From Octopus bimaculoides (lineage: Eukaryota), in NCBI RefSeq assembly GCF_001194135.2, contig NC_068986.1:116639482-116688267 (forward strand): a DNA stretch of 48,786 nt, given 5' to 3'. Made by a program: the position numbers and the translations under genes. The stretch's first letter is position 1. Each line of letters starts with the position of its first letter. The notes under the pieces are model-generated. The model was not told where the DNA came from. It saw only the letters and a list, made by a program, of their open reading frames with translations, and ran no database searches. Positions 2,591-36,274 of this stretch are shown piece after piece.

Positions 2591-5500
2591 ATGTGCACAT
2601 GCATGCGTGAGTGGCAGTGAGTTAAGTTTGCTTCAGAACCACATGGTTTTGGGTTCGATCCTATGAGATGGCACCTGGGTAAATGTCTTCTATTATAGCT
2701 CCAGGCTATCCAAAGCCATCTGAATGGGTTGGTAAATGGAAACCAAAAGAAGCCTATCATATGTGGGAGTACATTTGCATTTCTTTGTCTTGACGATACG
2801 TTAGTTGAAGGTCACCGTCATGTAAACAACGACACTCATTTCCAATATTTTGTGGAGAAATGTCAGGCGATGGGGAAATATTACCTCGGAGGGGAAACAG
2901 GTGAAGGTTGGTAACAGGAAGGATAACATCCAACTATAGATAATCTGCCTGAATAAATCCATGGAAAAATAGATGTTAAAATGCTTTGAGGAATGGGCCT
3001 CATGGAAGCAAAGTGGCTGAGTTCCTTTCGAGTGTTGGGCCTCACGGTGGCAATAACCAAGACCTTTGGCATTACGTAATTTGAGAAGAAGATCCATGAA
3101 GCTGAGTAAAATTGCAGTCGTGGCACATACTGGTGTCACGCAAATCAGCACCTGTACCGATGGCATGTAAACACACCTCGGTGTCACACAAATGGCACCC
3201 ATGCTGGTGGCATGTAAAAGCACCCATTACACTCTCGGAGTGGTTGGCATTAGGAAAGGCATCCAGCCATAGCAAACCATGCCAAATCAGACTGGAGTCT
3301 GGTACAGCCTTCCAGCATGCCAACCCAGTCCAATCCATGCCAGCATGGACAACCAACGTTAAATGATGATGATATTACATGCTGGCCATGTAAAAGCACC
3401 CATGCCAGTGCCATGTTAAAAGTGCCCAGTATACTTTGTAAAGGAATGGCATTCAGCCGTAGAAACCACGCCACACCAGACACACGGAGCCTGGGAAGCT
3501 CTTCCACTGGCCAGCTCCAGTCAAACTGATGCCAGCATGGAAAACATTAAACAATGATAATGAAGGTTTCTTTTACGTTCAGTCATAATAAAAACTTTAC
3601 AAAAGTATGGAGTAACCCTTCAATGAATGTAGAGTACAAACTATTCTTTAATAAGACTAGTACTGATGGAGACTTCGAAGTTTCAGTCAGCTAAGCCATC
3701 ATTGGACAATCAGATGACTGCTTAGCTAGCCAAAACTTTGAAGTCACTGTCAATAAATACTATTATTTAAACACACACACACACACACATTTACTGCTAA
3801 CGAATTAGAAAGATGTATAAATCGTTCGTGGTTACCAATTATTTCAATTTATTACATTAAAAGACCAGGTGCTATTGTTACCTTTTACCATCCGTGTGTT
3901 CAATGTCCAACCAAAGCACATCATAAGGAATGTCATGAACATCAAAATTATTATCTACACTGAAAGCAAAGAATAAAATAATTAAGAGACTAGCTTACAT
4001 AAACAATTGAAGTACAGAATGATAAACAAGCAGAGTAAGTAAAAAAAAAGCCATTTGTATAGTATCCTAAGGATAAGTGACAAATATTAGAGAGGGCATT
4101 AATCTAGTTGCTGAGATCTGTTTAATGAAATGATGCAAGTAGAATTCAGTGTTGTGGCCTAGACATAGAAAAACATCTGGAATGCGATATAATATGACCT
4201 CATGATTACATATTCACAAGCTGATATCATATTTTTAAGGTGGCAGGCTTAATCTGTTTAACATTCAGATTACTGTCAAATTGAATGCGTATTTATTGAC
4301 ATTGTTTTTGATTAATCTTGTAATTTGAAGATGTGATTGTTTATTTTAAAAATGACATTATAGGGTAGGTCCGAGAAGCTGATTCTAGTCAGTTTGAACA
4401 TAAAACAAAATTTGGGTCCCGAAATGGTCAGGTTAAAAGCATTTGGATCAGGATTCCAGTTCTTGGCTGCTCTGTTAAAGGACATCAGCACTAAACCCTT
4501 CCTTTTCTCACCAAACCAAAAACAAATATTTAAAAACAAAAATGTTAAAAGAGAATATGAAAGCCACCAACACATTTTTGCTTCTTCTCTTTATTCAATA
4601 ATAATGGTTCAAATTTTTGTAGAAGGTCAATAGTTCTTTTAGGGAAGTAGGTAAGTGAATTATATTGACCCTAGTACTCAACTGGTACTTATTTTATCCA
4701 CCCCAAAAGAATGAAAGGCAAAGTCAAAGATGACCAAATTTGAAACACAGAAATACTGCCAAGTAACATGTCTGACTTGTTATTTTGCCAGTGCACCTGT
4801 AAGAAAACCACTATAAAATAACAATGGATAAACTATAAACTGGCCTAATAAAGTTCTTTGGATGAGCTAATGTAACATTATTGTTCTTACACAACAAACT
4901 TGCTTTTAAGTTAACATTAAACCACATATGTTGTAGAGTAGGTTAGTCGTTCTGATGTTATAAGCATATTTCAACATAAGTACATCTGGCTGAATTGATC
5001 CAACTCAAACAGTTTTGTTTATAATGAATGGTTGAAATGAGTTTGTTTTAAAAAAAATTACTTTTTCTACACTGCTAGAGTCAGTTAACCAAAACCTTTA
5101 CCCAACTACAACTTGCAGTTCCAGTAGCAAAAGATACTCACTTTTTGACATCTTCTTCATCATTATAGTTCCAGCGTGACTGGTGATAGGCCAAAGCAAA
5201 TAACTACAAAATACGTAAAAAAATTTAAAAAAACTAATAGCATACCAATATATCTTTACAAACAGTCAGTTCTAACAGCCTCTTGCTAATAGCAATATTC
5301 CTCATAGATTGCTGCATTACACTGGAGTAAGAGACAGGGAGAAGAATGTAGCCAATGATTAACTCAACTACAGAATGGTTTTAAGAGTTCTCCATAACCT
5401 ATTGGATCCTTCTCAGATTAGAAGAGTTAAGATAGAGCAAACTTGGTGTAGCCCAAGTTTATGAATTTGGAGATTGTCTAAAAATATAAATCACCAACAT

Positions 5501-7556
5501 TAAAACGTTTCTCCCCCCCCCCCCTCAGTGTATAACTTAAGGGCTGTAACAGAATTTGAAGAAACCTTACAGCAGCAAACCCACTTATTTCATTTAGTGT
5601 TAAGGTAAAACCTGAAACTATAGAGGGTTGGAGTGATGGGTTGAACAGAGTTCTTTCATAGTAAGAGAGAGAGAGACAAAGGGAAGGCATTGCTTGACAG
5701 GCCAGAATAAGTTTGCTTAAGAACAAAGCAGAGTTGCAAACCCTTAAAGGAGAAATCTGATTGGCTAATCAAATAATATACAGGAATTGTTATTGCTGTG
5801 TGTTCTAGTCTTATAAAAGCTAGTCTATTAGACAAGGAAATTTGAGTTACAGATATAGTTTTTGTTCTTTCTTTTTGTTAGCAAAAAGATTTAAAACCTA
5901 TTTGGAATTAAAAAAAAAAAGATTCAAATGAGTAAAATCAGTTTTCCTAAACTATGAATAGTGCCAAAGAGAATAAAAGACAAAGAACCTCATATCAAAC
6001 TGATAGTTCATGAAGTACATGCAAAAACAACAAGAATACAAATCAAGCGTGTATCCATTCTTAATGTTTTGGCAGATTTAAACATGATTATTTGAGCACT
6101 GCTGGTCTTCATCAATGGAAACAGCTTCTTTTAGAGGATGTGCTTATAGCACACAACTGACCAGTGTAAGGGGACTTGGAAACACGGCAGAGTGTCCCCT
6201 TAGTCAAAGGAACGTCTAGTTTACAGAAATCAACAAATTATCTTCTGATTTCTATGAACAGACACCTGTGCTCTAGTTAGAATTATTGGTTCAAACAGGG
6301 AAGCTTTGACTGAGGAGACACAATAAGGTTGAAACGCCATATTGTCTCAAAGTAACACCCCCTCCCAATGCCTCCTTACATCAATGAATCACGTGTGTTA
6401 TAAACACACACCATCTATGAGGAAGAGGTGTTCTCTGATGATGTAAAACAACAGCAATCTGATATTCATGTTCAAATCAACCACATTTTACAAATTGATA
6501 CCATTATTTAACGTCCGCTTTCCATGCTGGCAATGGGTTGGATGGTTTGATTGAAAACTGGTAAACCAGGAAGCTGCACCAGATTCTGATTTGGCAAGGT
6601 TTCTACAGCTGGATACCCCTCCTGATGCCAAACACTCAGAGTGCAGTGGGTGCTTTTTACATGCCAGTCACCTGACACCAGCCATGACCATGGTCTCACT
6701 TGGCTTGACAGATCTGTTATTCTTAACCTAATGTCCTTTACATAAAAATGTTAATGTTTTGATCACATTCAAGCTAATTTCACTAATTCTGAGTAATAAA
6801 AAAAATTTGAAGCAATTTTTCATATTTACTCTAATTTGCTAAATCTGGAGAAATTTAGTGGAAGCACATGACCTAGTGGTTAGGGTAGCAGACTTGCAGT
6901 CGAGGGATCGTGAGTTCGAATCCCAGACCGGGTGATGTGTTTACGAGCAAACCACCTAAGCTCCATGCAGCTCTGGCAGAAGGTAATGGTGAACTTCAGC
7001 TCATTCTTTCTTCCTGCATCTAGCAGCTCATCTGTGATGGACTGGCATTCCGTTCAGGTGGGGAACCTATACGCCAATGAAACCGGGAAACCAACCCTTA
7101 TGTGCCAGGCATGGCTTGAAAAGAAACAAACAACAAAGATGATTAAAGGAAACCTACTGGTGGAAGTGGTGTGGTTCCAGTGAGTAGTGAATACTGATAA
7201 AATACATCTCTTGGTTTTGGTCCCAGCATTACAAACACATCAATGATACCACTTTCAGAGAACCAATGAGTATCTGTCTGTGGTATTTCCTGGTCACCTT
7301 TCACATAATCCATCATCTTCTTAAATAAATTCTGCAAGAGTTAAGAAAATTCATTATTACATGACGACAGACTCACCCATCAAAGACAACACACGAGCGT
7401 CCAGCTTTTGCTGAATGACCTGACAAATAATTTGTTTATAGTAATCAAAAGCTCGTGCCGCACATTAGCTTGCTCTCTCCATCAAACAGATGTCTGAACA
7501 GGTGCATGGTGTATCACGTGTCAGGTGAAGTGATCACACCCACATACACAAAACAC

Positions 7557-7647
<91 letters not shown>

Positions 7648-10600
7648 AAGAGACATACACATGAAAAAGGCAGTAAATAGAATGAAGTTGTCCGAAACAT
7701 TTACAAAGATTTACAAAAAAAAATCCAGTTAGTGTTTCTCTTCAACAAAAAGACACCCTGAAATCTTGTTAATATCAATCCATCATGCTGACAACTTATC
7801 CCTTAATCTGGAACATGAGTAATCTGACCACACTTATTCCTTACCAGTGCCCACACCTGCTGTCCCAAATACCCACACTTCATGGCATTCATCAAACACA
7901 GAAATGACAGCTAATTTACATTATACACACCCATACCAGTATTACATTATGAATACCAAACCAGTTATATGACCATACCAATTTAATCACATCTCCCCTA
8001 TACTTACGTGCCAACACACTAAACTACTCACTCTTCTCGTTTATGCTCAACTTTACATAAATATTAACAACGCTTCAGACAAAAACCAGAATTTCACTTG
8101 TTCCTTTCTAGTCATTTCACATTTTCTGTACAAAAGGCTTTTCCTGCCACACCAAAGAGATCTGATGTATCATTAACATAATTAAACATTTCTTGAACTA
8201 CTTACTGAGGTCTATAAATAATTGTATAAGAAACAAAAGGGCAAGAAAATAAAATCATAAAACAAAAAAAAAAAATTTACCTTATCAGCAACATTTGAAG
8301 TGATGTCAATCCAGGTTTCTGCTGCATTGTGCCAAAAAACCCCAACGGTTCTCTCTTCACTGAATAGAGAAGAGAAAAAAAAAACAAATCTTTAGCTAAT
8401 TCACATTCAGATTACTCAGGCAAATGTAATGCTTATTTATTTACATGGTTTTGAATTAATCATGCACTATCTGGTGTCTCTGACATTTCAATATGATTAT
8501 ATTATTTTTGAACAACATTGTATGGTATGTGTGAAAGGCTGGATCTGTTTGAACATAAACCAGGTCAAATATTTGGGCAGGATAAGGCTAGTTTGAATAT
8601 TAAGGGATTTAAGTAACAACAGCAAATATAACTGCTGCAAACATAAATACTTCATAAAACAAGGGTGTGGGTTCTGACAACTACCAAGAGGTTTTATCAT
8701 ACCCAGTTTGAAATCTCAGACATTGAATCAACATCTACAATGTAATTCAACAAGTAAGCCTCTTTGTCGTCACATAGCCCTCTAGAAATAGCAACCAAAT
8801 CTCCTTCAAACAAATCATACCCCACTGCTTGAGAGAGTGAAGGAGTATGTGTGTCTGTTCTGACATTGTATAATTGTAAATGAGTGTCACTGTCTTACAA
8901 GCAGTGTCATTAACTTCCAATATTCTATGAAATATTGTCTGGCCAGGGGGAAATATTATTCTGAAATAAGTGAGGGTTGATGACAGGAAGGGCAAGAGGT
9001 TATAAAAAAAACTTGCCTCAGTAAAACAATGATTTTTATAAAATTTTTCATTATTTTCAAAATTAATTAAAAATAAAAGCAACATAACAGAAATATGGTA
9101 ACAAAAAGATTAAAATGAGAAAGAAGTGGCAAACTATCTACATGTCCTTTTCAGGCCCTGCTAAACTGAAAAATAAGAATTAATGAATGAAGTTAAATTA
9201 AGCAGTGGTTAAATTTAGTTCCAGAGAATATTTGGACAGTCTTTGGTACAAAGTTGTGGGAAGTAACAAAAATTTTTTTAAATGGCTTTATTTGTAAAAA
9301 AAATACAAGAAACATGTGACAACATACTTATGAGCCAACATAACAGGAATACTGCCATATAAAGCCATAGGATTGTATAATTCATATTCAAACACATCCA
9401 AGTTGTAAAGCCGATAGGGATCGGTGCTTCTGGAAAATACAAAACAAAACAAAGCCTCAGTGAATTTATTCTGACAACGAAATGTATTGCTATTTAGAGC
9501 TGTTGATTTGGAATACAAACTTTGAAATAATTGCACGGCTTCTCAAAAAGGAGAGGATTTTGATTAAAAGATTCTATACCAAAACTATTAAGGTTAAATA
9601 AGCTATTGAAAATTTCATTTTTAAGAATTATTGCTTTACAATATTTCCAAGATTTCATTCTAGATAGTTTAAAGAAAACTATTTCAACAACCACCAAGTT
9701 CAATTAAATAAAATACAACTTGCAAACAGTCTTCTTTCTCAAAAGAAATAAGGAGTGGCTGTGTGATAAGTAGCTTGCTTACCAACCACATGGTTCCGGG
9801 TTCAGTCCCACTGCGTGGCACCTTGGGCAAGTGTCTTCTACTATAGCCTCGGGCCGACCAAAGTCTTGTGAGTGGATTTGGCAGACGGAAACTGAAAGAA
9901 GCCCGTCATATATATGTGTGTGTGTGTATATATATATATAAATATATATCATCATCATTGTTTAACGTCCGCTTTCCATGCTAGCATGGGTTGGACGATT
10001 TGACTGAGGACTGGTGCAACCGGATGGCTACACCAGGCTCCAATCTAATTTGGCAGAGTTTCTACAGCTGGATGCCTTTCCTAACGCCAACCACTCAGAG
10101 AGTGTAGTGGGTGCTTTTACGTGTCATATATATAAATATGTGTGTGTGTGTGTGTATGTGTCTGTGTTTGTCCCCCTAACATCGTTTGATAACCGATGCT
10201 GGTGTGTTTACATCCCCGTAACTTAACAGTTCGGCATAAGAGACCGATAGAATAGGCTTACAAAGAATAAGTCCTGGGGTCGATTTGCTTGACTAAAGGC
10301 AGTGCTCCAGCATGGCCACAGTCAAATGACTGAAACAAGAGTAAAAGAGTATCTCAATTTATCTAAAAGTTGTGACAAAAGTGACAGAAATCATACATAC
10401 TTTGTAGACTTTAGTGCAAAACTGTCAGCATGTTCTGGAATGCCATAAACATTTTCAAAGCCAGGGAAAGAGATGTCAATACCAACTGATGTGGGACCTG
10501 TACAATAAACAGCAGAACTAGTTTATAACAACAAACGCTTCAACATTGAGCAAACAAAAAATTAACTTATTAGAAATAATACAAATCAATAATAGGTATT

Positions 10601-13600
10601 TTCACCAAAACGGTCATGTTTAGGGAATTGAAAAATTTTTTTTTTAGAAACAAATGTACACTCATCTCTATTATAAAATCAAATATGAATAATTCATCCA
10701 GAGCTCAGATGATAGTCATTCAACCAATTCTTGGCACTCCGTCACTTCTGACGTCGAGGGTTCCAGTTGATCCAATCAACGGAACAGCCTGCTTGTGAAA
10801 TTAACGTGCAAGTGGCTGAACACTCCAAAGACACATGTACCCTTAACGTAGTTCTCGGGGATATTCAGTGTGACACAGTGTGACAAGGCTGACCCTTTGA
10901 ATTACAGGCACAACAGAAACAGGAAGTAAGAGTGAGAGAAAGTTGTGGTGGAAGAGTACAGCAGGGTTCAATCACCATCCCCTGCCGGAGCCTTGTGGAG
11001 CTTTAGGTGTTTTCGCTCATTAAACACTCACAACACCCGGTCTGGGAATCGAAACTGCGATCCTATGACCGCGAGTCTGCTGCCCTAACCACTGGGCCAT
11101 TGCGCCTCCACCATTCAACCAATTATCTAACAATAAATACCATATACAGATAATTAATAACAGAAGCAGTATTAGTACCAAAATGGAATTTCTTATGCAC
11201 CATGGGTCCATATGAGAGGACTTCTCAAGGTAAATAACACAATATTTGGTAATACTATTCTATATTTTTTAGATGAGGAATTATGTACATTATTTACAAT
11301 GGACAGACAGGTGTCCACACCTTGTTTGTTCTCACCACAACGTTTCGGCTGATGTATTCTCCAGCCTTCATCAGGGGTTCTTTATTTAATCAAATAAAGA
11401 GTTGGGTTTGAAATTCCACCAGAACACCTGATGAAAGCCAAAATGTGGTAACAACAAACAAGATGAAGACCCCTATCCCTCCATTGTTTTACTGTTAGTT
11501 TTGTAGAAAACATGAGAGTTTTTTATGCATTTACACAATTTATTGCATTACTACAAATTTAGCTTTTTTATTATTTTATTTTCTACATGTCTGGTTAATG
11601 TGGTGTATTTCGAATGTAGTGTACTTAGGTTTTGGCTATCTTGGGCTGTTTTTGTTGTTGTCATTATAGTTTGTGCAGTTATAGAGTTGGAGCTGATAAA
11701 TAGGGATATGTTCAGATTTCTGATATGATTCAGACTATGTTTAGGTGAATTTATTGTGTTTTGTGCTGTTGGTTTGAAAATGGGAGATTTTTTTAATTAA
11801 GCAGAGAACAAATGAGTGCAAGTTAAAGAATTTTGGCACTTGTTCTCTATGCCAACTGCAATAACAGCTACACTTGAATTACCATTTGGTTTAGAATCAG
11901 TGAAAGACTTGAAGGTTTCTTCCCACATATCTGGTTCCTCAGGTTCAGATTTAGATTCCTCTTGAGTATTTTCCTAAAATCATAAAATAAATAAAAGATA
12001 TTACATTAGCATTTTCCAGTTAAGCCATTCTATCAAGAGCAGTATTAAAAGAACAGGATCAAAAGATGCATGCATGCACCCAAACATGTTCCTATTATAA
12101 GTTGGGCAGATTTTCTGTGCAGTATCTTTCCAGGCACAAATCAATCTTGTGTCAAACTGCAAGCAGGTTTTGGTTTCGTTTTTTTATAACAGTTCTGCCC
12201 AACCTTTAGGCAACTGTTGTGATGGAGGGAGTTAAGGTTGTTTATTACAATAAATAAAAAATGCACGTTTCATTGGTCAACACCATTGCTGGAGTGGAAT
12301 TCACTCCACCACATCACATTAAAAAAATACACAGCACCAAACCAGTGTACACCATTGAAGGTGTCACTACCCGGATGAAGATGCATTGACAACCAACTTT
12401 TTGAGCCGAGTTCAAAACGGTCAAACATGGCATTTATAGCAATGGTCTTCAGCTTTGGACTACACTGGATGTAAGGAACCAAAAACGTTTATAAATACCT
12501 ATATTTAAACATTTCCTATCCAGTTTGAAGCTAAATGCCATATATAACTAGGTAGATAATAGAGATATTGAATAAATATTATGAAAAGTAGAAAAAGTTT
12601 TAGTGTAAAAATGGCAGATTGAATGCACTCAATCACAGATCAATAAATATAAATGATCTTCTAATTGTGTAAGTGTCCATGCACTTGCAGATGTAACAAA
12701 GTTCCTTCATTCTAGGGGGCGGGAAAAAAATCCATTATCTTACCTTTTTCTCTTCATTAGATTCACCCCCTTCTTGTGGAGGCTCAGCAGGATTAGCATC
12801 TCTGAAAGGGGTTGAAAACCAAGAATATACATAGGAACCAATCCTAGACAACACCCCCCTACAAAGGGAACAAATGGGGCAGTCATTTGTATTGCCTATT
12901 ATGGCTGCAATAGCAGTTAGTTTAACAATAGCATACATAAATTAGCAAATGATTTATTCTAGATTTTAGTTATTAATCAGAAAACATTTGAGGAATTGGC
13001 AGAAAGGACACTATTAGTGTCTTTATCGTTTAATCACAGTTAACTAGTAGATTTTAGTAGCCTTTGTTTATAAATGAAATTGTGGAGTTCAAATCTCATG
13101 TGGACATTGTAGATATTCAGAAACAGGCCATCTGACAATGATAAGAACTAAATACTAACACAAAAGATAAAGTTAATAGTCAGATATAATTTAATTATGT
13201 CACAGATGAATTTAATTACCATAATATTTCAGAAGAATTCTCATTTCTCAGACTTTAAAATAATACAATTAACCATATTACTAATTATTCAAAAGTTTTA
13301 AATTTGTAGTAATCATTGGTGCAATCATTCCATTCCAAGTAGTATTCTAATTACATTTTTAATAAATAGAATATCTTTGATACCAATCTGAGACTGCTCC
13401 TGGTTCTATGATACAAACACAACCATCATCATCATTGTTTAACGTCCGCTTTCCATGCTAGCATGGGTTGGACGATTTGACTGAGGACTGGTGAAACCAG
13501 ATGGCTGCACCAGGCTCCAATCTGATTTGGCAGAGTTTCTACAGCTGGATGCCCTTCCTAACGCCAACCACTCCGAGAGTGTAGTGGGTGCTTTTACGTG

Positions 13601-14646: not shown

Positions 14647-17600
14647 NNNNNNNNNNNNNNNNNNNNNNNNNNNNNNNNNNNNNNNNNNNNNNNNNNNNNN
14701 NNNNNNNNNNNNNNNNNNNNNNNNNNNNNNNNNNNNNNNNNNNNNNNNNNNNNNNNNNNNNNNNNNNNNGAGAGAGAGTGAGAGAGAGAGAGTGAGAGAG
14801 AGAGAGTGAGAGAGAGAGAGTGAGAGAGAGAGAGAGAAATGAAAAAAAAAGGGGGGCAGTGAACTGGCATCATTAGTTTACAGCAGTGAAATAGCATTCA
14901 GCATCATCTTCGTTTAATGTCTGCTTTCCATGCTGGTTTGGGTTGGACGGTTTGACTGAGGACTGGCAAACCAGGGCTGCACCAGGCTCCAGTCCGATCT
15001 GGCAAGGTTTCTACAGCTGGATGCCCTTCCTAACACCAACCACTCCGAGAGTGTAGTGGGTGCTTTTTACATACCACTGGCATTGTAACTTAACTCAAGC
15101 ATTTATAACAATTTTTGCTTTCTGTTAAACATTTTCTTCAATATGGTGTTCAAGCAAACGAAATTCAGCAAATCTGAGAGAGTGAGAAAAGTGAAAGCAC
15201 AGAGAGAAATTTACCTCTGTCTTTATCACTTGCTGTGTGACCATATTACTGATTACACTACAGGGAAGCTGACATCATCAAATTAGATACTATAATTTGC
15301 TTCTGCTTGTTACCATATTCCTGTAGAAATACAGTGCCTTTGTTTCAACTTCAAAACTTATAAAGAGTTTAGCAAAATAACTCATTATGGAATATAAATC
15401 AACATGAAATTTTTTGATGGAATCTTTCAAATTGAATTTCTAAAGCAAGAAGTTTGAAAGATTCCAACTAAAAGCAGTGTCAGGCAGGATGGTACCAAGA
15501 GGGTTAACATTACTTATTTATCTCCACAGTACTGGCATGATAAGCTATTCAACTAACATGCAGCATAGTGAAGTGTCCTGCTTCGGTTTGATATCTGTGA
15601 CAAGAAAATAAACCCCACCAGAATTCAAATTATGAATAATTCATAGGACACATTATGTCAGATTCTTGGTAAAATAGACCAGCCTACAAGTGCTAAGTCA
15701 TTGATAAACTATCTCGAGTTAAAAAATAATATAGTTTAAAAAATAGCAGAAACAAATTACAGGATGTGCTTTGAAGAGACAGAACGATAGGCATACTACA
15801 ATGAAATTAGTAACACTGTTGTATAAGCAGGTGATAGACAAGGGTTTAGGCCTCATCAGTGAACTTGTTACACAATAAAAAACATTAATTTGAGACAAAG
15901 ATCAAAAGGTTTATTGGATTGGTTAAGAAAATTTATCTAGTCCATATAATATGTAAGTGCACTGATTTAAGTGGAGGCGCAATGACCCAGTGGTTAGGAT
16001 AGCGGACTCACAGTCATAGGATCATGGTTTCAATTCCCAGACCAGGTGTTGTGTGTGTTTGAGTGAAAACAAAGCTCCATGAAGCTCCAGCAGGGAGTGG
16101 TGGCGAACCCTGCTGTACTCTTTCACCACAACTTTCTCACCCTCTTTCTTCCTGTTTCTGTTGTACCAGTAATTCAAAGGGTCAGCCTTGTCACACTCTC
16201 AGTCATGCTGAATCTCCCCAAGAACTACGCTAAGGGTACACGAGTCTGTGGAGTGCTCAGCCACTTGCACGTTAATTTCACGAGCAGACTGTTCCGTTGA
16301 TTGGGTCAACTGGAACCCTCGTTGTCGTAACCGACAGAGTGCCGTAGTAGCATCAACTTAATATAGGATCATAGAATATGGTTGATTAAAATAGTTGCAC
16401 AAATGATAGCGGGAAGCTATGTGAAAGAGAGAAAGAGAGAAGGTCAAAAACACAAAATACTTGAATATTTAACAACAAATTGTCTGTGAACACTCATGAA
16501 GTGGGTCGAAATTTGCTGGTCATCAAGTCTCGTTTCATCAATATGAACCATTATATTAGAGATTTGTTTGACCGCTCTTTACATACCCCTATCAAAACCT
16601 CAGGTTTGCTTTCTTCTCACTAGAAAGCAACACTTATTAGATAAATAAACAAGAGCCATGACCACCCTATGAATTTGATTTCGGTGGCACATAAAAAGCA
16701 CCCACAACACTCACGGAGTGGTTGGCATTAGGAAGGGCATCCAGCTGTAGAAACTTTGCCAGATCAGATTGGAGCCTGGTGCAGCCTCCTGGCTTCCCAG
16801 ACCCCAGTCAAACCGTCCAACTCACACCAGCATGGAAAGCGGACGTTAAATGATGATGATGATGATTATTGGAAAGGGGGGGGGGGACAATGACAACAAA
16901 TATTAAGACTAACACTGGTTCAGGGAGTTAATAGTCACTCAAGCTGTTGCTAATGAATGCCCTTCTCTCTCAATGATATTCACTAGACTGGAGTCTGGTG
17001 CAGCCTTCCAGAATGCCAGCCTGGTCAAACCGTCCAACCCATGCCAGTATGGACAATGGACATTAAATGATGATGATGATGAACTAATAACACTGACCTT
17101 ACAGCACCTTGTATGGGATTGAGGTTCATGACAAAACTTCAGTGGATATGAACACAAGATTTCAGAAGATCATACATCATTATCATCTCAATTATATATT
17201 TCAACAAGATATATTCACTCATAATTAAAGTAATGCCTACAAAGATCCATGTGACTGTTAGATAAGTGATACTTTTCCAGATCAAAACAGAAAGCCAATT
17301 AGCATACACATGCACATGCCACTAATAGAACGTACTTCTCCCAGTATAAAAAGGAGATCCAAATAAATAGAACCAATAGGAAAAGTGACAACCATCCGAG
17401 ATGGTCAGCAGTTTGCATCATATTATGCTGGAACAAACCAAAACTGTTGATGAGCATAGTACTACATGTGGGTGGAATGGTCCACCACAGTAAACAGAAG
17501 TTGTGCAATAATGTAAACTGCATTTCATCAACCCAGCAGTCCCGAGTTCAAACCTTCATGTAAGCTTGAGCTATGATAGAAATACTAACACTGCTAAATA

Positions 17601-20600
17601 TAGAAGTAAACTAAAAGGATGAGGATTGCATCAGACAAGGAGGGCAAGTTATGGTAGCAATCACGTGTCAGTCACTCAAACTTTGATCCAAATGAGAACC
17701 AAGTTATAAATCACTTCCAGTTTCTAATTAGTTTCAATCAACTTTTAATTATTTCTACCTGATACTAACAACCAATATCACTCACCTGGCTTTCTGAGCT
17801 ACTCTACTGAGTTTTAAATTCTAAGCTGTTAAAGTCCAACTTAACATGAAGTTAACTCAACAAATTTAAAGAAGTTAACACATTTAAACTGACCAACTAA
17901 AGCAGCCAATCAAGACAGTGCTAACGAAGCAGCCTCTTCGTAATTAGTTGACCCGATAGAAGAAATTTTAAAAAAGGAACCGACACATTAGACAATGTAA
18001 TCAGAGATTCTGCCTGAAAAACTAGTCTGGGTGATCATAGCTGGTTTGGGGTGAAACCACAGGTAACACTAGTTCACTCTAGTTTCCTTAATCTTACCTT
18101 TAATAGTAGGGAAATAAACCTTTGACTGAGGACTGGCGAGCCAGAAGGCTGCACCATGCTCCAATCTGATCTGGCAAAGTTTCTACAGCTGGATGCCCTT
18201 CCTAATGCCAACCACTCCGAGAGTGTAGTGGGTGCTTTTACATGCCACCGGCACGAGGGCCAGTCAGGTGGCTCTGGCAATGACCACGATCAAAAGATGC
18301 TTTTTACGTGCTACCTGCACGGGAGCCAGTCCAGTGGCAATGGCAATGACCAGGCTCGAATGGTGTTTTTCACGTGCCACTGTCACATGCGATGGTAAGT
18401 CAACACTGGCAACGATTATGCTTGAATGGTGCCTTTTATGTGCCACCAGCACGGGAGTCAATCCGCAGCCCTGGCAACGATCATGCTCCGATGTGCTTTT
18501 AACATTCCACTGGCACGAGTGCCAATCGGGCAGTACTGTCATCGGCTGACTTTTAGGAGGAAAGCAAGGGGTTAAGAGCACCAAGTATAAATGTTAGGAC
18601 TAAGCATCAAGAAAATTACAGGATAGAGTCAGAGTAGTTTTTAAACACACTTGCATAAACTGTTTTATTTTCTTACAAGTACAATATTAGACGTCAACAA
18701 GTGTTGGTACATCTATAACCTAGTCACAAACTATTCCACCAGCTTTGCAGTGATAGTAGAATATAATAAGCATTAAAAAGTAAAGTGAGTATGAAAACAT
18801 GTGCATATTGTAATCAACAATCATAACTTGTGATGCAAAACGCCATCTCAGATTAGCTAAAAAAAAAAAAAAATTCAAAAAAATTCTTGGAAAACAAAAA
18901 TTAAATAAGCTTATTTACTCACTGTTTTTGTCGTAAATGTTCAAACTTAAATAAACCTTGGCTGTTAATGCTTAAAACAGGATGGTCATTTGTGAGAAAG
19001 TCAATCCGGAATGGTTCGGCTGTGATGACTACATGATTTGTTTCAAACGATAGAATTAAACTATTTTTGTCTTTAGATACTAATTTCAGGCTGAAATAAA
19101 CAAAAGATAAAGATTAATTACAAAAAAAAAAAAAAAAAAAAAATGCTGAGCACACACGATTCAACATTTTCCCTATACAGCATAATATACCATCACTTGC
19201 AAAAGTTAACCGAATGTTGAATTATAAAATGCAAGGTCTCTTAAAGAGAGTATCTTATTTACTGTTCCAGTCACTGGATTGTGGCCATACTGGGGCACTG
19301 TTTTTCTACAGTATAGTAGAGAATAACATGGGTGGTGTTGACTTTGTTGTGAAATGCAGCTCGTCAGCAAACTGAGCTTCTCCAAGTCTCATAACCTTAA
19401 ACCTATTCTTATCATTTGACCCATGCTAGCATGAAAGCCCAATATTAAACGATGATGATGATGATGTAACTCACTATCAATGCATTTGTCTCATCCATGG
19501 TAGATTCAGACAAGTCAGAGCTGCTGCAATGCATTCCTATAGTTGAAGGACTTATCCAGAGTTTGAGCACAAAATGAACAGGGAAAATATTTGATGTGAA
19601 TATAGTCAGTTTAAAGGGTTATGCATTTCAGAAACTATATAACCAGAAGTAAGACAACACATACAGGCTAAAATGTGTAGGTAACCAAATCTTAAGTTCT
19701 CGGATGGCACCAACTGGTCAGAACCACCAACAAGCCATCATCAAGATCTGCATCAAGTCAGAAAGATGCCGACAAGTTCAAAATAGCTCCAGAAAAAACT
19801 TATAAAGTTGAAGGCCACTATCAGTAAATGATCTCTTGGTGTTATCTGAGAAGAACATTTGTAACTTGGTTATAAGATGCTCGACAGCCAGTTAACAATA
19901 CAATGATCCTGGGGCCTATAATCAAACAGCACAAGGATTCAGCTGACATATTGTGAAGAAATATTGTTTCCACAAAGATTACTGAGGTTAACCAAGGTAC
20001 ACCTTACAGAACTGCACAACATCCCATAGAACTGGAAGCAAGACATTTGGCCATGTAGGACAGATCCATGCAAATTTCTGCCAGATAGCCATGGTGGATT
20101 TAAACAGGGGAATCAGAATTAACATGATAGGAATAACTTCTAGAATGGCCTTGGAAAATATCTACAGTCAGACATTCTCAAGGGAATTGTCCTCACTTCT
20201 CAATACAGTCAGAAACTCATGGAATGGAAGATACTCTTTTGTAAAAGAATAAAACCTTTGAAAATTATCAAGCATCTTCTACGATGCTAGTTGAGAATCA
20301 TAGGATAGTTAAATGGAAGAGCAACAAACCACCACCACCAACAAGCATGAGTGTTCTGCTGGTTTGCTTGCCAATTTTGATGATAGGCATTTAGCACGAG
20401 CTTGCTAAATTGTGAGGATGAAGGTCTGGTAACAATAAAAAGTTTTTCCCCAAAAAAATTACAGATCCAAAATCAAGATATGTCTTCTATTATGCAGTAT
20501 CTAGGAAACCACAAAATATTCAAGTTTTATGAACATATTTATGACAACTTCTTGGGTAAACATTCACTCAAGATGTTGCCAATGAGTGTCTTTCTCACTC

Positions 20601-23600: not shown

Positions 23601-25460
23601 TGGATGGGAGGAGGTGGTGGACGGGGCAGAACCCTTCATGGACATGCATTACAATGGTTTCAGGATATCAATTCTGTGGTGGTGGGCAGGTCACCAGATA
23701 TCTTGGTCTTTTGTCACCTTCTTCATGAGACTCAGCATTTTGAGATTAGTCTTTATTGGTCCCATGTACTTTAACACTTTTGTTACCATATTTCTGTTGA
23801 GATGCTGTGTGTTTCTTTCAATTAATTTTAAATACAACAAAGAATTTAGTAAAATAATTTAGTTATCACTAAGCTAGTGTTAGGAACATAAATTGTGACT
23901 AAGGTTTGGTGGAAGAATTTAATTCAAAACTTATGGAAACAAGACATTTATACTAGAGAGCCAGAGGCAGTTTCAGCCCGGTTAATATCGAAAGGGTTAA
24001 GCAATCAGCACTTCTTTATGCAATTTTCCTCATTCACAAGCATCACATGACCAAACCAGTGCAGTCTTCTCTTGCACACTGCATCTAATTCCTCTTATGC
24101 CCAATGCTTCTCTCAATACACTAGCGCACTGTTGCATATGTACACTGACATTGGACATCCAATGGAGAATAACAGGTTCATTTCTTTCTAGTCTTCACAT
24201 GTCCACTGCATTCAAGGCCCACATCTCGCTGCCATGTAGCATTGGTAGTCATACACATCCATCATAGAATCTTCCTTTCACTTGGGGAAAGAGACTTTTG
24301 GCAGCCAGAAGAGGTAAAAGCTCTCTGAACTTTCTCTATCGTATTATTCTGGTTAGGGAAATTTTTAAAAATGACATTAAACAATACTAACAATTTAAGG
24401 TTGTACATGGATTCACAATCCATGCCCTGATACTTGAAGTCAATCTAAGGATTCTGTTTCAGTTCTATAATTGGTTGCTGCAGGACTTTTTATTTTATTC
24501 AGAAAATGGAATTATTTCCTTTCAAATATAACCAGGAGCAGGTGTGGCAAGGAGTTTACTTCCCAACTACATGGATTTGGGTTCAGTCCCACTGCGTGGC
24601 ACGTAAGGCAAGTGTCTACTATAGCCTCTGTCTGTCATACATACACACATCTATGTTTGTGTCTCCCACCACTGCTTGACAACCAGTGTTGGTTTGTTTA
24701 TGTCCCCATAACTTAGCAGTTTGGCAAGAGGAACCAATAGAATAAGTACCTGGCTTAAAGAAAAAAAAAGAACCAGGGTAAAGTCATTCGATTAAAAATT
24801 CAAGGTATGCCCCAGCATGGCCATAGTCTAATGACTGAAACAGGTATAAAAAAAAAAAAAAAAAAAAAANNNNNNNNNNNNNNNNNNNNNNNNNNNNNNN
24901 NNNNNNNNNNNNNNNNNNNNNNNNNNNNNNNNNNNNNNNNNNNNNNNNNNNNNNNNNNNNNNNNNNNNNNNNNNNNNNNNNNNNNNNNNNNNNNNNNNNN
25001 NNNNNNNNNNNNNNNNNNNNNNNNNNNNNNNNNNNNNNNNNNNNNNNNNNNNNNNNNNNNNNNNNAGGGGGGGGGGGATATTGAACAATAAAATGTTATA
25101 GAAACAACTTTCTGTATACTGGTTAGGTTCTGTTAAGGTAGAGAGAGATAAGCATTTTGTTTAATTCTATGGTCATTAGACTATTTAAAGAGTTCAGAAT
25201 ACAGTGAGCCATGTTAGCAGAGACCATAAACAATAGAAAGGAAAAATAAATTTAAAAAACAGAGTATTTTAACCTAGAAACAATAACACATCTCAACAAA
25301 AACTGAAAACATGAAACACTTCAGATAGCTCGCATATGAATGATCGCCCAACATTTATAATGAAGAAACACTGAAATGCTTTTAAACATCACAATTAATA
25401 AATATTTCGTAAAGGAACAATCTTCGCTTTTGAACATTTCATTGATAAACAGGTTAACAG

Positions 25461-25510
<50 letters not shown>

Positions 25511-28500
25511 CATGCATTTATTTGATGAAAGGAGTCATTTGCTTGTTCAGACATGATCAAAGGAATGTCAGAATGGATAAATAATAATACATTGACATAT
25601 GCCAAGGAAATCTGGTAGTAATTTCAGACAACTACGTGAATTGGAACAACGAGAGAGAGGAAGAGAAAGTGTGAGTGTGTGTTCACAAACATAATGAGTT
25701 GGCTGCAGTAGATGTAAGCTCACAAACCATAAAACAGCAATGCTATACTTTATCCATAAAGCTATTGCACAAAGTCACTTGATCTGCAAGAAGTAGAAAC
25801 CAAATCTTCCTCAAGTCACACTTTTAGAAAAAAATAATGGATAATGTGGTCATGCATACATTATTCCTGATGTAAAAACAAAATAACCACAGCTGGAATA
25901 ATATAATAGGTGTGAATAATCAGTATTTATCTGCAGCCAAACAACTTCCCAAATCTTCAGCCAAATGTTTGGATGTTTAAGGGTTCATAAACTAGTTTTG
26001 CACAACATCTATTTGGAAGAGAATGAAATGTTAATGGCCCTGTCTAACTTCGTATAAACAAATATTAGAACAGGGTGGAAGACAAACCATACATATTGAG
26101 ATATCTTACAGAGGTCAGTTTAAATGATCCTATTTTGGTAACCTGAATGAAGCCAATTCCTTTCTAAGACAAACATTTCAGCTGTACTCGAATGTTCTTC
26201 ATCATTTAACACCCATGTTCCAGGCTAACATGGGTTCAATTGTTTGATAGATCAAACTGATCCAAACACTGCACTGTTCTCCAGGGTCTGCTTTGACATA
26301 GGAATGACATCCAGCAATAAAAAAACTAACTCTAACCACCTGTGCTGGTGGTATGGAAAAAACACCTAACCATCTCTAGTGACAGTGGCAGAATAAAATG
26401 CACTCAGTCCATGCTGTAAAATGATTGGTCATAAGGGAATCAACTATAACAACATACCAAAAACATGATATGCAACACACTTGACATGTTTGAGTTGCTG
26501 TCTGTTGTGTGGCAGGTAATGAAAGACTTATCTAATTCTTGCTTGTATGGAAAAAATGGACAAATGATATGATGACTGTATATGTGAGACCACTGCTCCA
26601 GGATGTGTGAGCAACACTCCTTGACAGCATAAACTTGTGTTCACTATTCAATTGGCAGAAGAAAACAAAACACAACACTAGAACACAGACAAGCAGAAAT
26701 AGTGATAGTAAAAATGGAAAAGTCTTTGATGTTTCAAGCCCATGCTCTTCAACAGAAAGGAATGAGAAAAGAAAACAAAGAGAAAAATGTGTCTGGTTAA
26801 ATAGTTTCAGATGTTGGCATATATTTTACCTGCTTGATGCTGCTAAAATCAGAATTAAATCCCTGATGTTATTACGGACTATTAGATCCATAAAAAGGAA
26901 AAAAATTGGTAAGAAAGACTGAGTAAAAAAAATTTTAATTATATGGAGAAGCAAACTTGAATTTAATAATACACTCCTCGAGAAGAGAAAGAAAAAAAAA
27001 ATCAAAAACCAATTAACATAATAATAAATAATTCAACTTACTTCTGCAAAACTGGTTCCTTTATTAAAGTATCTCCAATAGGAATTTCATATCGAGATTT
27101 TAATGGGGAGAACTCGTTTAATTTTATGCGAGCCATATTATGTGCCAGAGCATAGAGCTCAAGTTTAAAGCGTACATTGTTTTTTCTGTTAACAAGTTGC
27201 AAAGTTATACTTGAAGGTTTTAAATCCAAAGAATCCAGCAGTACAGCGTATGAGGAATGACCAGCTTCCACTGCTCTTTGGCGCCTGGAAATGAAATTTA
27301 TAAAAGTATATAACAAAGAGGAAATGTACAAAAGTTTCAGTTTCGATAAAATAAAAAAAAAAAAAAAAANNNNNNNNNNAAAAAAAAAAAAAAAAAAAAA
27401 CAATTGGATATCAATAGGCATTAATATAGGACAATCAACTCTATCAGCTCAGACAATGGGGGCAGAGTTGACACAATCGAAGCAGATACGACTGTGTGAC
27501 GAAGGCGGTGAGCTGGCAGAATCATTAGCACGCCAGGCAGAATGCTTAGCAGTATTCCGTCTGCTGTTACGTTCTGAGTTCAAATTCCACCGAGGTTGAC
27601 TTTGCCTTTTATCCTTTCAAGGTCGATTAAAAAAGTACCAGTTACACACTGGGGTCGACGTAATCGACTTAGTCTATTTGTCTGTCCTTGTTTTCCCCCT
27701 CTATATTTAGCCCCTTGTGGGCAATAAAGAATTAGATATGACTGGGTGGTTAAATTCTTCACAATCATAATTCTACATTCGATTCCAGAGTACCATTTTG
27801 AAGAAATTTTTTTCTTTATTGTATCATGAGTTTGATCAAACAAAGACTTGTAAATGAAATCTAGTAGATGGAAAATACGTGCATATATGTGTGCACATGC
27901 ATGCATGTGTACTCAAGCAGGTATAGTTGATAGTCCAGGTGTGACAGTGTGGCTAAGAAGCTCGATTCCCAACCATGTGACCTTGGGTTCAGTTTCAGTT
28001 CCACTGCATAGCACCTTGTAAAATGTGGCTTCTACAACAGCATCAGGCCAACCAAAGGCTTATGTGTGGATAGGGTAGATGGAAACTGAAAGAACCTGTC
28101 ATACATACAAGTATATATTGGGCCATCCCACAAATAATGCAGCTTTTTCAATTGCATAAACTAAAAGTTGAAGTGGGATGGGATAAACTACCTGCATCAA
28201 TTTGCTATAAAAGCGGGTAGCAATTTTACCTCGTACTTATTCTTAGTGCAAGCTTTGAAGAGTGCAGTTTGATTTTAACAGTTATTTTTGCAAAGCTACA
28301 ATGGAAGTGACAAAGGAACATATTCCGCATATTTTGCATTATGAGTTCAATAAAGGCAACAACGCAACGGAAAGTGCGAGCAATATTAATGCAGTATATG
28401 GGGATCGGACAATAAGCGTAAGCCAGTGTCAGCGGTGGTTCCAGAAATTCTGAGCTGGAAACTACAACCTAGAAGACGAGCCTCATCCTGGAAGATCTGT

Positions 28501-29355: not shown

Positions 29356-32300
29356 ATTATTTATGGGATGACCCAAGATTTATAAACAATGTGTGTAGGC
29401 AGATGAGTACACTTGCCTTGACATCACATGATGGTTGTAAACAAGAATTACTATCATGTACATGAAGGGTTCCACCCACCTTTGTCTTGTGTGGGAAACT
29501 GGTCTGGCCATGAGAAAATGTTACCTTGCTTGGAAACAAGTGAGGGTTAGTGACAAGGGCAATGGTCCTTATAAAATCTGCCTTAATACCAATCCAACTC
29601 ATACAAACATGGAAAAAGTGGATGTTAACCCTTTTCTTACCATAGCTCTTGAAATGCACTGCCTTCGTTTCAATTAACTTTGAAACTAATGAAGAATTTA
29701 GTAAAATAACTCATTATTAATTTTTTTTTTTAAGATAAATTAACATGAAATTCTGATGGAAGGCTTTCATTCAAATCTTTTTTTTTTATAAAAAAAAGCA
29801 AGTTTATATCATAGAACCAAGGGTAGCTTCAAAGCAGGTTCAAATGGTATCAAATGGGTTAAAACAATATTTTTTATTAAAACTTATGACTCACTTGCAA
29901 AAGCCACTTTGCTCACAGGTTTTGAAATTTTCTCTACTAACAGCTACCACGCTGTATATTAAACATATACAATAAAGAACAACATGCCAATGTTGGGCCA
30001 TAGTTGACCTGGAAAAGAAAAGAAAAAAAACTTATAAATTTCAACAAATAACCCAAAACAACGTTGATTTATAACAATAAAAACTATTAAAATTTCAATT
30101 TTTTTCCCCCCCAGGTCAATTTTATCTTTTCACTCTTCCAGAGTCACTTTGGCTGCCACCTCACCACCTTCTAAAATCAATATGTAATAAAATGTGGAAA
30201 GTTGAGAAGACTACTACAGCTTTTATATATCAAATTTGAATAGTGAATTCGTTAACTTTGGCTGGTATTAGATAAGGATAAACTATTTATTACTGTTACT
30301 AAATTTTAATTTTCTATAGCCACCTTCACATTCCAAGACTACCATTGGGATCCATCAGGTACCGGACAAGGATCCTGGACTATTTTTCCAGTTTTAATTT
30401 TTGAATTCGACACACGAGTTAGCAAGACATTGTTAAAAGGATCAATAACGTAAATTTAGAATTAGACAATCTTATAAGTAAATGAGTTTGTTAAGGTCAA
30501 TGCTTTTATATTCCAGTTATACTTGATACAAATAACATAAAACCTATTTTATAAAGCGACACATTTATAAAGGAAAGGGAGAAAGAACATTCAGGTGTTT
30601 ATTTCTCCATAGAATTAAAATAGCAGAAATGAATTCTGAACTGGCTTTTGTGAAGAAGTGAAATCTGGGTTACAAACTCAACTTATATGGAAAGGTTACA
30701 GCTAAACAACAATGGTACTAAATATAATTTGTTATATAGAGATCAAACAAAAAGATGAAGCTAATGTTAACTTAAACATTTCCAATCAAATCTTAACTGA
30801 CAACACTCTTCAATGATAGCCATGTGCCGCTTATCAAATTATAAGACCAAGCAAGGAGGTAGGGGTATAAAAAAAAAAACATACTACAACAAAGAGATAA
30901 GAAACGCTTACATTTTAAATTTTATCAATAAATACAATCCCAACAATTGAATAAAGGACCACAGATGGCCTCAGAAAATGTCAGAGAGAACAGAAATACA
31001 TGTTTGTGAATTTATTTGTTAATAAACAGTTGCGTTTATTTATATAACACACACACACACACACACACACACGTAGATGGCCCCACTTGATCTGTAGATC
31101 AAGGTGTGGGTAGAAACTCCATACGATGTACCCAATGTAAGCTATGGACACATAAAAGGCACAGCAATAACAAAGGAAGGTTAACTGGGAAGATAGTTTT
31201 TGTGTGTGGCAGATACACAAGGGAAATAAACACTGAAGATGTACAGAAAACAGATTTTATCACATGCCAGGGGGGAAAACTAGAAGTAATTGATAGTTTC
31301 TGCTACCTAGGTGACCAAGTCTGTAGCGGAGGTGGTTGCTCTGAGAGTGTAGTGGCTAGAATAAGAATAGCCTAGGCAAAGTTCAGGGAGCTCCTACCTC
31401 TGCTGGCAACTAAGGACTTCTCGCTCAGGATGAAAGGTAGACTGTATGATGCATGTGCGCAAACTGCCATGCTACATGGCAGTGAAACATGGGGTGTGAC
31501 TGCTGAGGACAGGTGTTGGATTGAAAGAAATGAAGGTAGTATGATCTGCTGGATGTGTAATGTCAGTGTGCATACACAACAGAGTGTAAGCGCCCTGAGA
31601 GAAAAGTTGGGAATAAAAAGCATCAGATGTGGTGTGCAAAAGAGACGACTGCACTGGTATGGTCATGTATTACATATGAATGAGGATAGCTGTGCGAGGA
31701 AGTGCCACACTAACTGCGGAAGGAACCCGTGGAAGAGGNNNNNNNNNNNNNNNNNNNNNNNNNNNNNNNNNNNNNNNNNNNNNNNNNNNNNNNNNNNNNN
31801 NNNNNNNNNNNNNNNNNNNNNNNNNNNNNNNNNNNNNNNNNNNNNNNNNNNNNNNNNNNNNNNNNNNNNNNNNNNNNNNNNNNNNNNNNNNNNNNNNNNN
31901 NNNNNNNNNNNNNNNNNNNNNNNNNNNNNNNNNNNNNNNNNNNNNNNNNNNNNNNNNNNNNNNNNNNNNNNNNNNNNNNNNNNNNNNNNNNNNNNNNNNN
32001 NNNNNNNNNNNNNNNNNNNNNNNNNNNNNNNNNNNNNNNNNNATCTTGGAAATCCGCCGGCCCAATGGTTTCCCTTCATGGTAGAATTAATAGTGCTTGC
32101 AGGATAGGTCCTCTTTACTCTATATTTTAAGGTTGTTTAGGGTTGACAAGAAAGAACAATCTTCTCTGACCAGTATTCCAGAGTTCCCTCCAGGACAACG
32201 GCTGCTCAAGTGCTTGGTCCCATTATATCCCTTGTCCCTATTATGCAAGCCCTACTGCCTTCATGTGGCAATCTTCCTCTGTTGAATCATGTGGAAAGTT

Positions 32301-35300: not shown

Positions 35301-36240
35301 GGTCCCTAGTTATTAGATGCAGTTGATTGTCTAGTTTGTCTGTTTTAAATAATTTCAAATTCAATATAATTATATGTGTGTGTGTGAAGCCAGGACTGAT
35401 AACCATCACCCACCCGTCCAACTTCCTCAAACCACGACAGACTATACAGAGATAAAGGAGAATGACAAGAGAACAGAGTCCAAGATCTCCCATACTTTAG
35501 ACGATAAAAATAAAAATGCTCAAGCGATGGCTTTGAAAGTGGGGTTAGCTGAAGCATAACAAAAACAAGACTAAAGGAAAACTGAGATTAAATCAATTGA
35601 CAGAATTAGAATAGGATTAAAATTGAGGTCAGATTTTGATTGAAGTGGAGATGATGTATTCATAATATGTGAAATATGAAACTTTCAATTAAGATTATAC
35701 AAAATATCATCTTTGATTAGTGTTTAAGAGATAGGCTAATGATTAGGAGATTGGGAGGGGGACATAGTGATGAGGAGAGGAGAGAAGGAGCGAGAGGCGA
35801 GAGACAGAGGAGAGACAAGAGAGAGCGAGCGAGAGAGAGAGAGTGAGAGAGGGACGAGAGAGAGGGGGGACGAGAGAGAGGGGNNNNNNNNNNNNNNNNN
35901 NNNNNNNNNNNNNNNNNNNNNNNNNNNNNNNNNNNNNNNNNNNNNNNNNNNNNNNNNNNNNNNNNNNNNNNNNNNNNNNNNNNNNNNNNNNNNNNNNNNN
36001 NNNNNNNNNNNNNNNNNNNNNNNNNNNNNNNNNNNNNNNNNNNNNNNNNNNNNNNNNNNNNNNNNNNNNNNNNNNNNNNNNNNNNNNNNNNNNNNNNNNN
36101 NNNNNNNNNNNNNNNNNNNNNNNNNNNNNNNNNNNNNNNNNNNNNNNNNNNNNNNNNNNNNNNNNNNNNNNNNNNNNNNNNNNNNNNNNNNNNNNNNNNN
36201 GATAAGAGCAAGAGAGAGAGAGAGTGATAAGAGAGAGAGG

Positions 36241-36274
<34 letters not shown>

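Follow-up and report, generated by a model that had tools for sequence, protein, structure and literature searches.

The 48,786-nucleotide stretch of Octopus bimaculoides DNA analysed here (hereafter, the window) contains on its minus strand part of a GANAB-like gene, predicted to encode the alpha subunit of glucosidase II. In this gene, the 57 nucleotides that directly precede the usual start of exon 5 probably represent a conserved, optionally included 5' extension of that exon, generated by two 3' splice sites for which the exon 4 donor at position 18923 is the common partner. Use of the inner acceptor (first exon base 12801), which is constitutive-like, would lead to the canonical short protein, and use of the weaker upstream acceptor (first exon base 12858) would add a basic, aromatic and helix-prone amphipathic segment. 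The anatomy of the sequence, the pattern of conservation, the match in phase and position with other animals and the amphipathicity of the segment were all computed directly. The novelty lies in the architecture, i.e., an alternative-acceptor variant of an already known optional GANAB segment, and no description of the two-acceptor arrangement was found in the literature searched.

Two acceptors for one donor

The elements that compose the splicing unit are listed below in the order of transcription, with a slash marking an exon border.

18923 to 19090, minus strand: exon 4 (..LKLVSKD.. to ..FEHLRQK plus CA), the shared donor exon, ending in phase 2 (CAA AAA CA/GTGAGT).
12882 to 12887, minus strand: candidate branch site AATGAC, identified by sequence match, with its A at 12883, 24 nucleotides before the upstream AG.
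12859 to 12881, minus strand: upstream 3' splice site, made of a C/T-rich tract and TAG (AG at 12860-12859), with an AG at -57 in five genomes.
12802 to 12858, minus strand: putative optional 5' extension of exon 5 (57 nucleotides, 19 residues; long isoform), assigned from its open frame and conservation.
12800 to 12824, minus strand: TCTTGGTTTTCAACCCCTTTCAG/AG, which encodes SWFSTPFR and contains the tract and the AG (12803-12802) of the inner acceptor, with near-invariant nucleotides.
12744 to 12801, minus strand: constitutive part of exon 5 and start of the acidic loop, with the donor AAG/GTAAGA.

The donor at 18923 is followed by two in-frame acceptors, whose first exon bases are spaced 57 nucleotides, within the stretch ccccatttgttccctttgtAG/G GGG GTG ... 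CCT TTC AG/A GAT GCT that lies about 6 kb 3' of exon 4. The intron that separates the extension from exon 4, also about 6 kb, has only an approximate length as it includes an assembly gap of 123 N (14647-14769). At the upstream acceptor, the minus strand reads caaatgactgccccatttgttccctttgtAG/G GGG GTG TTG TCT AGG ATT GGT TCC TAT GTA TAT, and the 3' half of the extension runs as TCT TGG TTT TCA ACC CCT TTC AG/A GAT GCT across the inner acceptor. The junction codon specifies Gln with either acceptor (CAG with the upstream one, CAA with the inner one), and the short protein obtained via the 12801 acceptor reads FEHLRQKQ/DANPAEPP.... A preliminary description of the window had proposed the donor and acceptor coordinates (18923, 12858 and 12801), the open 57-nucleotide frame, the Gln codon at either junction and the candidate branch AATGAC with its pyrimidine tract and TAG; the coordinates are all correct, the frame and the junction codon are confirmed from the sequence and the exon 4 donor, and the branch candidate is present at 12887-12882. 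Thus, at the sequence level, the window presents the layout of an alternative acceptor, namely two acceptors 3' of one donor that both keep the frame.

The same description had called the upstream element a second strong 3' splice site. Its presence 57 nucleotides upstream is borne out, whereas its strength is not. Indeed, when acceptors were scored with a rough matrix, trained only on the gene's own 11 other acceptors, the inner site reached 4.6, within the leave-one-out range of the constitutive acceptors (2.1-17.1) and at the 95th percentile of the gene's AGs, whereas the upstream site scored -2.3, at the 74th percentile. The low score of the latter is due to the composition of the tract, as the acceptor tracts of this gene are T-rich and that of the upstream acceptor is C-rich. 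Runs of 20-27 T are found just 5' of the exon 4 acceptor (window 19121-19140) and of the upstream acceptor in the related locus L004 described below (around 13415-13440). No other AG intervenes between the upstream AG and the single branch motif that can be recognised, AATGAC, which as a motif is not conserved in the related loci L004, L005, L006 and L009. As the upstream AG is weaker yet first after the branch motif, the ratio of the two forms is not predictable from the sequence. At none of the gene's other 10 acceptors (0/10) is there an AG further 5' that is in frame, free of intervening stops and preceded by a pyrimidine tract of 0.7 or more.

A third in-frame AG (12844-12845, tctAG/GAT, first exon base 12843), whose use would add 14 residues, was also considered. 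It has a poor tract (0.5 pyrimidine) and is common to the window and L004 and missing from L005, L006 and L009, and it was rejected as a conserved site.

Conservation and constraint in related genomes

Related loci were obtained by an exhaustive HMMER search in which exon 4 was used to find exon-sized open reading frames (ORFs) on large genomic contigs, where the exons were then mapped; two entries from this search, P0124 and P0134, are spurious repeat proteins and were discarded. The four loci that carry the segment are as follows.

L004 (ENA ERZ21867824): flanking exons with 71-81% protein identity to the window.
L005 (ERZ25069865): flanking exons with about 52% protein identity to the window; segment GWLNGVGDSIKSWFSPPFR.
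L006 (ERZ26696912): flanking exons with 41-50% protein identity to the window; segment GWVSRLSSALYSWFSPPFR.
L009 (ERZ25069870): resembles L005; segment GWLSGVGDSIKSWFSPGFR.

The closest named sequence is that of the bivalve Potamilus streckersoni, with 56% identity to the window over exons 3-4; L005 is closer to Potamilus (62%), and L006 (47%) and Saccoglossus (44%) are about equally distant from the window. In all four loci the exon 4 donor is in phase 2, and several kb 3' of exon 4 an AG is found exactly 57 nucleotides before TTTCAG/AG, followed by the acidic exon. Between 16/19 and 9/19 of the segment residues are kept in these loci, and the segment is also seen at the protein level in two further species (P0213 and P0215). 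The GANAB frame is the only one without stops in all five genomes, and the frame conservation that the preliminary description had asked for in relatives is thus observed, with no stops or frameshifts in any of the four. In addition, the extension has no indels in the five genomes, whereas the adjoining acidic coding part has indels and lower conservation. In particular, when the 500-nucleotide neighbourhoods of the window and L004 are compared, the sole alignable DNA extends from 6 nucleotides before the upstream AG to 5 nucleotides past the exon 5 donor, a block that matches the long exon and nothing else.

Within the extension, conservation takes two distinct forms. The first ten codons vary as coding sequence does: Gly-1 is encoded by GGG, GGT, GGA or GGC and Arg-5 by AGG or CGG, and the hydrophobic positions are replaced conservatively (V/W, L/V and I/V/L). 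In codons 11-19, 7 of the 9 residues are invariant across species, and this 3' half (TCTTGGTTTTCA.C...TTTCAG/AG) is nearly invariant in the five species even at synonymous sites. Indeed, all six degenerate codons for invariant residues in this part (TCT, TTT, TCA, CCT, TTC and AGA) are identical in four species, as compared to 6/46 residue-invariant degenerate codons in exons 2-4 of the same four species (Fisher p=4.5e-5). Pairwise nucleotide identity is likewise 19-24/24 in the 3' part and 14-19/33, for distant pairs, in the 5' part. The simplest reading of this synonymous freeze is that the 3' part codes for protein and at the same time supplies a functional inner acceptor with its tract and AG, and the constraint as a whole argues for both acceptors being functional. 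A conserved hairpin was tried as an alternative cause and rejected, as the four-species consensus fold reaches -4.9 kcal/mol and has no covariation.

A comparable situation is known for the class of tandem alternative 3' splice sites, where a donor is likewise followed by two in-frame AGs, the inter-AG stretch serves as pyrimidine tract besides coding for protein, and synonymous change is reduced, as in the window. In the NAGNAG class, the spacing is far smaller than the 57 nucleotides that separate the two putative sites here.

Public sequence collections were also searched for the segment. An exact look-up of the window ORF at 12735-12938 returned no record, and when metagenome contigs were scanned twice at the DNA level for the pattern of the invariant block, there were 0 and then 10 chance matches, none beside GANAB-like sequence.

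Counterparts in other animals and competing explanations

The added segment is positively charged overall and has many aromatic residues, and a strongly acidic run follows it directly. The amphipathic helical face noticed in the preliminary description is supported by a hydrophobic moment at 100 degrees of 0.52, as compared to 0.23 for shuffled sequences (p=0.002), and by an AlphaFold2 model of the 38-residue long exon, based on a four-sequence alignment, where residues 2-14 form a low-confidence helix followed by disorder. The moment is 0.47-0.53 in the five mollusc-type segments, which share the motif G-phi-phi-x-x-phi-G...SWFS(T/P)PFR, and 0.40-0.48 in the corresponding segments of mouse, fish and Saccoglossus and in an unverified cassette candidate of the locus L001; in each of these nine sequences the value is above that of shuffles (p<=0.011).

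The description had also mentioned an optional mammalian segment of about 22 residues after the FEH.R strand, and such a segment does exist. Indeed, isoform 2 of the mouse enzyme (PDB 7jty and 5ied) has a 22-residue insert at the same point, and shorter PDB entries are without those 22 residues; PDB fragment entries also indicate that the mouse enzyme is cut by trypsin in the region of the segment and the acidic loop. In human GANAB, exon 6 is a 66-nucleotide, 22-residue cassette that is optionally included and interrupts a disordered subdomain; it is repressed by PTB and nPTB and activated by PUF60, with U2AF also among its known regulators (PMC6093180, PMC1940037). The human exon is the only one for which such control by PTB, PUF60 and U2AF is known; in the window, the tract of the inner acceptor contains UCUU. 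The vertebrate exon (FSDKV(N/S)L(T/A)LGS(I/V)WDKIKNLFSR) occupies, like the octopus segment, a phase-2 intron position that separates the FEH.R strand from the acidic loop, has a comparable length and helical hydrophobic moment, and likewise ends with an aromatic residue (F-x) followed by a split codon AG/N. HMMER aligns 15 residues of the window segment with the mouse insert, with a score gain of only about 3 bits.

In the teleost-like locus L007, the cassette (GAC AC/gtgaga ... cctag/T TTC TCC ... TTC TCT AG/gtaaag) is 66 nucleotides long, in phase 2/2, and the exon that follows it is the acidic exon. Thus, insertion point and intron phase 2 are identical in the window, L004, L005, L006, L009 and the fish locus. 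In L007, the gene is located directly downstream of INTS5 (Pfam INTS5_N and INTS5_C; 1-2540 and 5300-9500), a neighbourhood that is the same in human and that supports orthology of the L007 gene with GANAB rather than GANC.

A further counterpart is found in the hemichordate Saccoglossus kowalevskii, whose protein XP_006822261.1 has an insert at the same site, KLLTRAGNMLQSAVSSIVQTFLPAR. It is about 25 residues long and is known from a computational gene model alone. In a shuffling test, the similarity of the insert to the mollusc-type segment is significant (z=4.6, p=0.0005); its N-terminal half is like that of the window segment (LLTRAGNM as compared to VLSRIGSY), and its last residues, ..PAR, come ahead of the acidic run.

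Other sequences with additional material at this site were recorded separately. L001 (around 1560-1664; near-identical contig L002), from a compact animal genome, has a candidate 105-nucleotide in-frame cassette (..ggtcag/ and AG/GTAAAT) in the homologous phase-2 intron; in the encoded LWEAVTTVYQAVGTVGTALPRIAYTWAQQWLSWS, the part LPRIAY..W..WLSW is loosely reminiscent of the mollusc-type segment, with a similarity that is not significant (p=0.27). P0079, P0007 and P0025 have in-frame extra segments at the same site, which may be retained or optional segments or simply represent read-through of short in-frame introns, and were not counted as evidence; that of P0079, GLFWKAYYYLAKWFVSQ, has G1, W13 and F14 in register with the mollusc-type segment. 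The coral-like locus L008 (10250-11432) contains one weak 120-nucleotide cassette candidate and no in-frame extension, and a related protein of Acropora palmata is annotated as 'isoform X2', implying another isoform.

Based on the same site, phase and helical periodicity, the octopus segment is probably the invertebrate counterpart of vertebrate exon 6. Common ancestry of the two is plausible, the balance being about even. In an attractive but unproven scenario, an ancestral phase-2/2 cassette would have lost its downstream intron, so that its terminal ...CAG came to adjoin the acidic exon and became the inner acceptor and its last codons the tract of that acceptor.

Several results weigh against an optional segment shared with vertebrates. 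The vertebrate version is a free-standing 66-nucleotide cassette with flanking introns that encodes 22 residues, whereas that of the window is a 57-nucleotide extension of 19 residues, fused to exon 5 and reached via an alternative acceptor. Similarity of the segment is weak to mouse (shuffle p=0.08) and not significant to fish (p=0.23), and that of the Saccoglossus insert to the vertebrate cassettes is also not significant. In L008 the phase-2 intron is kept, but a stop precedes its acceptor by 5 codons and no cassette there is convincing. On the side of the octopus gene, the matrix scored the upstream acceptor lower than every constitutive acceptor, and the mean predicted local distance difference test score of the AlphaFold2 model is only 59. 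Finally, the only annotated mollusc fragment recovered, KAK3597384.1 of Potamilus, has the short form only, and a word-index protein search with the variable region gave 1 candidate, with no close transcript or annotated protein matched.

A real and optional module that is merely convergent with vertebrate exon 6, in a disordered loop at a phase-2 intron that gains inserts easily, must then be considered, and it appears possible rather than probable. The non-significant similarity to the mouse and fish cassettes, the differences in architecture and length, and the coral-like locus without a clear counterpart are all in its favour, together with the many arthropod-like, nematode and other GANAB-like sequences that are without any insert. 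Convergence does not readily account for an insertion point and intron phase that are identical in fish and five invertebrate genomes, nor for the fact that all versions end in the split codon AG/N after an aromatic residue and share helical periodicity; in addition, it is a deuterostome, Saccoglossus, whose insert is significantly similar to the mollusc-type segment.

The remaining explanations concern the use of the 57 nucleotides in the window itself. The long exon could be constitutive, with the 12858 acceptor as the only one in use and the inner TTTCAG/AG kept for some other reason, e.g., the protein motif combined with an exonic enhancer or a codon preference. Conservation of the segment at the coding level in at least five species and an upstream AG that comes first after the candidate branch site would fit such an arrangement, but protein constraint alone does not predict six frozen synonymous positions against 6/46 in the flanking exons. 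Moreover, the last 24 nucleotides of the extension form a textbook acceptor with a score in the constitutive range, the upstream site is the weaker one, the orthologues of most other animals are without the segment, and the vertebrate counterpart is optional. All in all, constitutive use of the long exon is unlikely.

Even less probable is that the 57 nucleotides are never translated and act as an intronic element, i.e., supply a branch region and a pyrimidine tract to 12801 as the sole, constitutive acceptor. The 3' half is indeed pyrimidine-rich and conserved at the nucleotide level like a splice signal, and most known orthologous proteins, the bivalve fragment included, are without the segment. 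Such an element would nevertheless need neither a fixed length of 57 nucleotides without indels nor a single stop-free frame in five species, and neither four different Gly codons at position 1 nor conservative hydrophobic replacements. It would also not need a positionally kept AG with its own tract at -57, a significant helical moment or significant similarity to the insert of a hemichordate protein model. An unused AG between branch site and acceptor would normally be selected against. Lastly, a chance open frame beside a cryptic AG, without biological meaning, is effectively refuted, for a 19-codon open frame is not rare by itself and the frame is open further upstream in the window (ORF 12735-12938), but conservation in five genomes is confined to the long-exon boundaries and a comparable site is missing from all 10 acceptors of the gene that served as controls.

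The gene in the window and the meaning of a putatively optional segment

The exons of the gene were placed by tblastn with the GANAB sequence and the recovered homologues. All 12 coding exons mapped have canonical AG/GT borders and are colinear with GANAB.

1790 to 30001, minus strand: GANAB-like gene, 12 coding exons, with the ATG at 30001 and continuing past the left end of the window.
11883 to 11973, minus strand: exon 6, in which the acidic loop ends and the conserved fold resumes, placed by tblastn exon mapping.

The best match of exons 4-8 in the PDB is neutral alpha-glucosidase AB (E=2e-63), and homologues of the gene product carry the Pfam domains PF13802 and PF01055. With an N-terminal galactose-mutarotase-like domain and GH31 sequence similar to solved GANAB structures, the product can be assigned as a GANAB-like glucosidase II alpha subunit, i.e., a predicted GANAB/GANC orthologue of family GH31. 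The motifs of the GH31 catalytic nucleophile and acid/base fall outside the window, which the gene leaves beyond the last exon mapped.

As for the surroundings, assembly gaps (runs of N) are located at 14647-14769, 24870-25065, 27370-27379, 31739-32042, 35884-36200 and 43717-43726. Large ORFs at about 31430-32130 and 35717-36463 are spurious multi-frame ORFs that span such gaps and have no Pfam match; Pfam gave no matches on the large ORFs elsewhere in the window, and an Rfam scan of the window gave none either. Repeats include an (AG)n microsatellite of about 47 copies (7559-7653) in the intron just 5' of exon 9 (7331-7158), a 66-nucleotide unit in 2.2 tandem copies with 78% match (18236-18380) in the intron soon after exon 4, which may belong to a dispersed repeat, and a long GA-rich tract (around 35760-35880) that adjoins the 35.9-kb gap and accounts for the GC-skew peak there.

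Glucosidase II governs how the calnexin/calreticulin folding cycle is entered and left. Polycystic kidney and liver disease results, according to work cited in PMC6093180, from loss of GANAB, and mammals have two alpha isoforms that differ by exon 6 (PMC6093180, PMC1940037). In the literature reached, exon 6 serves mainly as a splicing model (PTB, PUF60, U2AF), with no function assigned to the extra 22 residues. From the properties described above we infer the use of both sites, the common ancestry, the fusion scenario and a function. The long form is expected to be regulated or minor, as it is in mammals. The added segment would sit at the root of the protease-sensitive acidic loop in the N-terminal domain, away from the catalytic core, and a direct effect on catalysis is thus unlikely. 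As a best guess, the segment may provide a docking surface, i.e., an optional helix for binding to a membrane or to a partner such as the beta subunit or another factor of the endoplasmic reticulum (ER).

That distant invertebrates have a similar, putatively optional amphipathic segment at this very site and in the same phase speaks for a long isoform that is ancient and has a function. Conservation of the segment exceeds that of the protein around it, and its splice signal has hardly changed. The segment is also a clear example of joint protein and splice-site constraint, and it may show how a cassette exon converts into an alternative-acceptor extension. In parallel, a short conserved motif and tractable non-mammalian systems become available for probing the role of the segment. 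A more far-reaching possibility, tentative and a little short of evenly balanced, is that the segment dates back to the protostome-deuterostome ancestor and has remained optional for over half a billion years, by means of a cassette in deuterostomes and, after the fusion, of an alternative acceptor in the mollusc-type lineage. If true, this would point to an ER quality-control enzyme with an essential role that is tied to a specific isoform.

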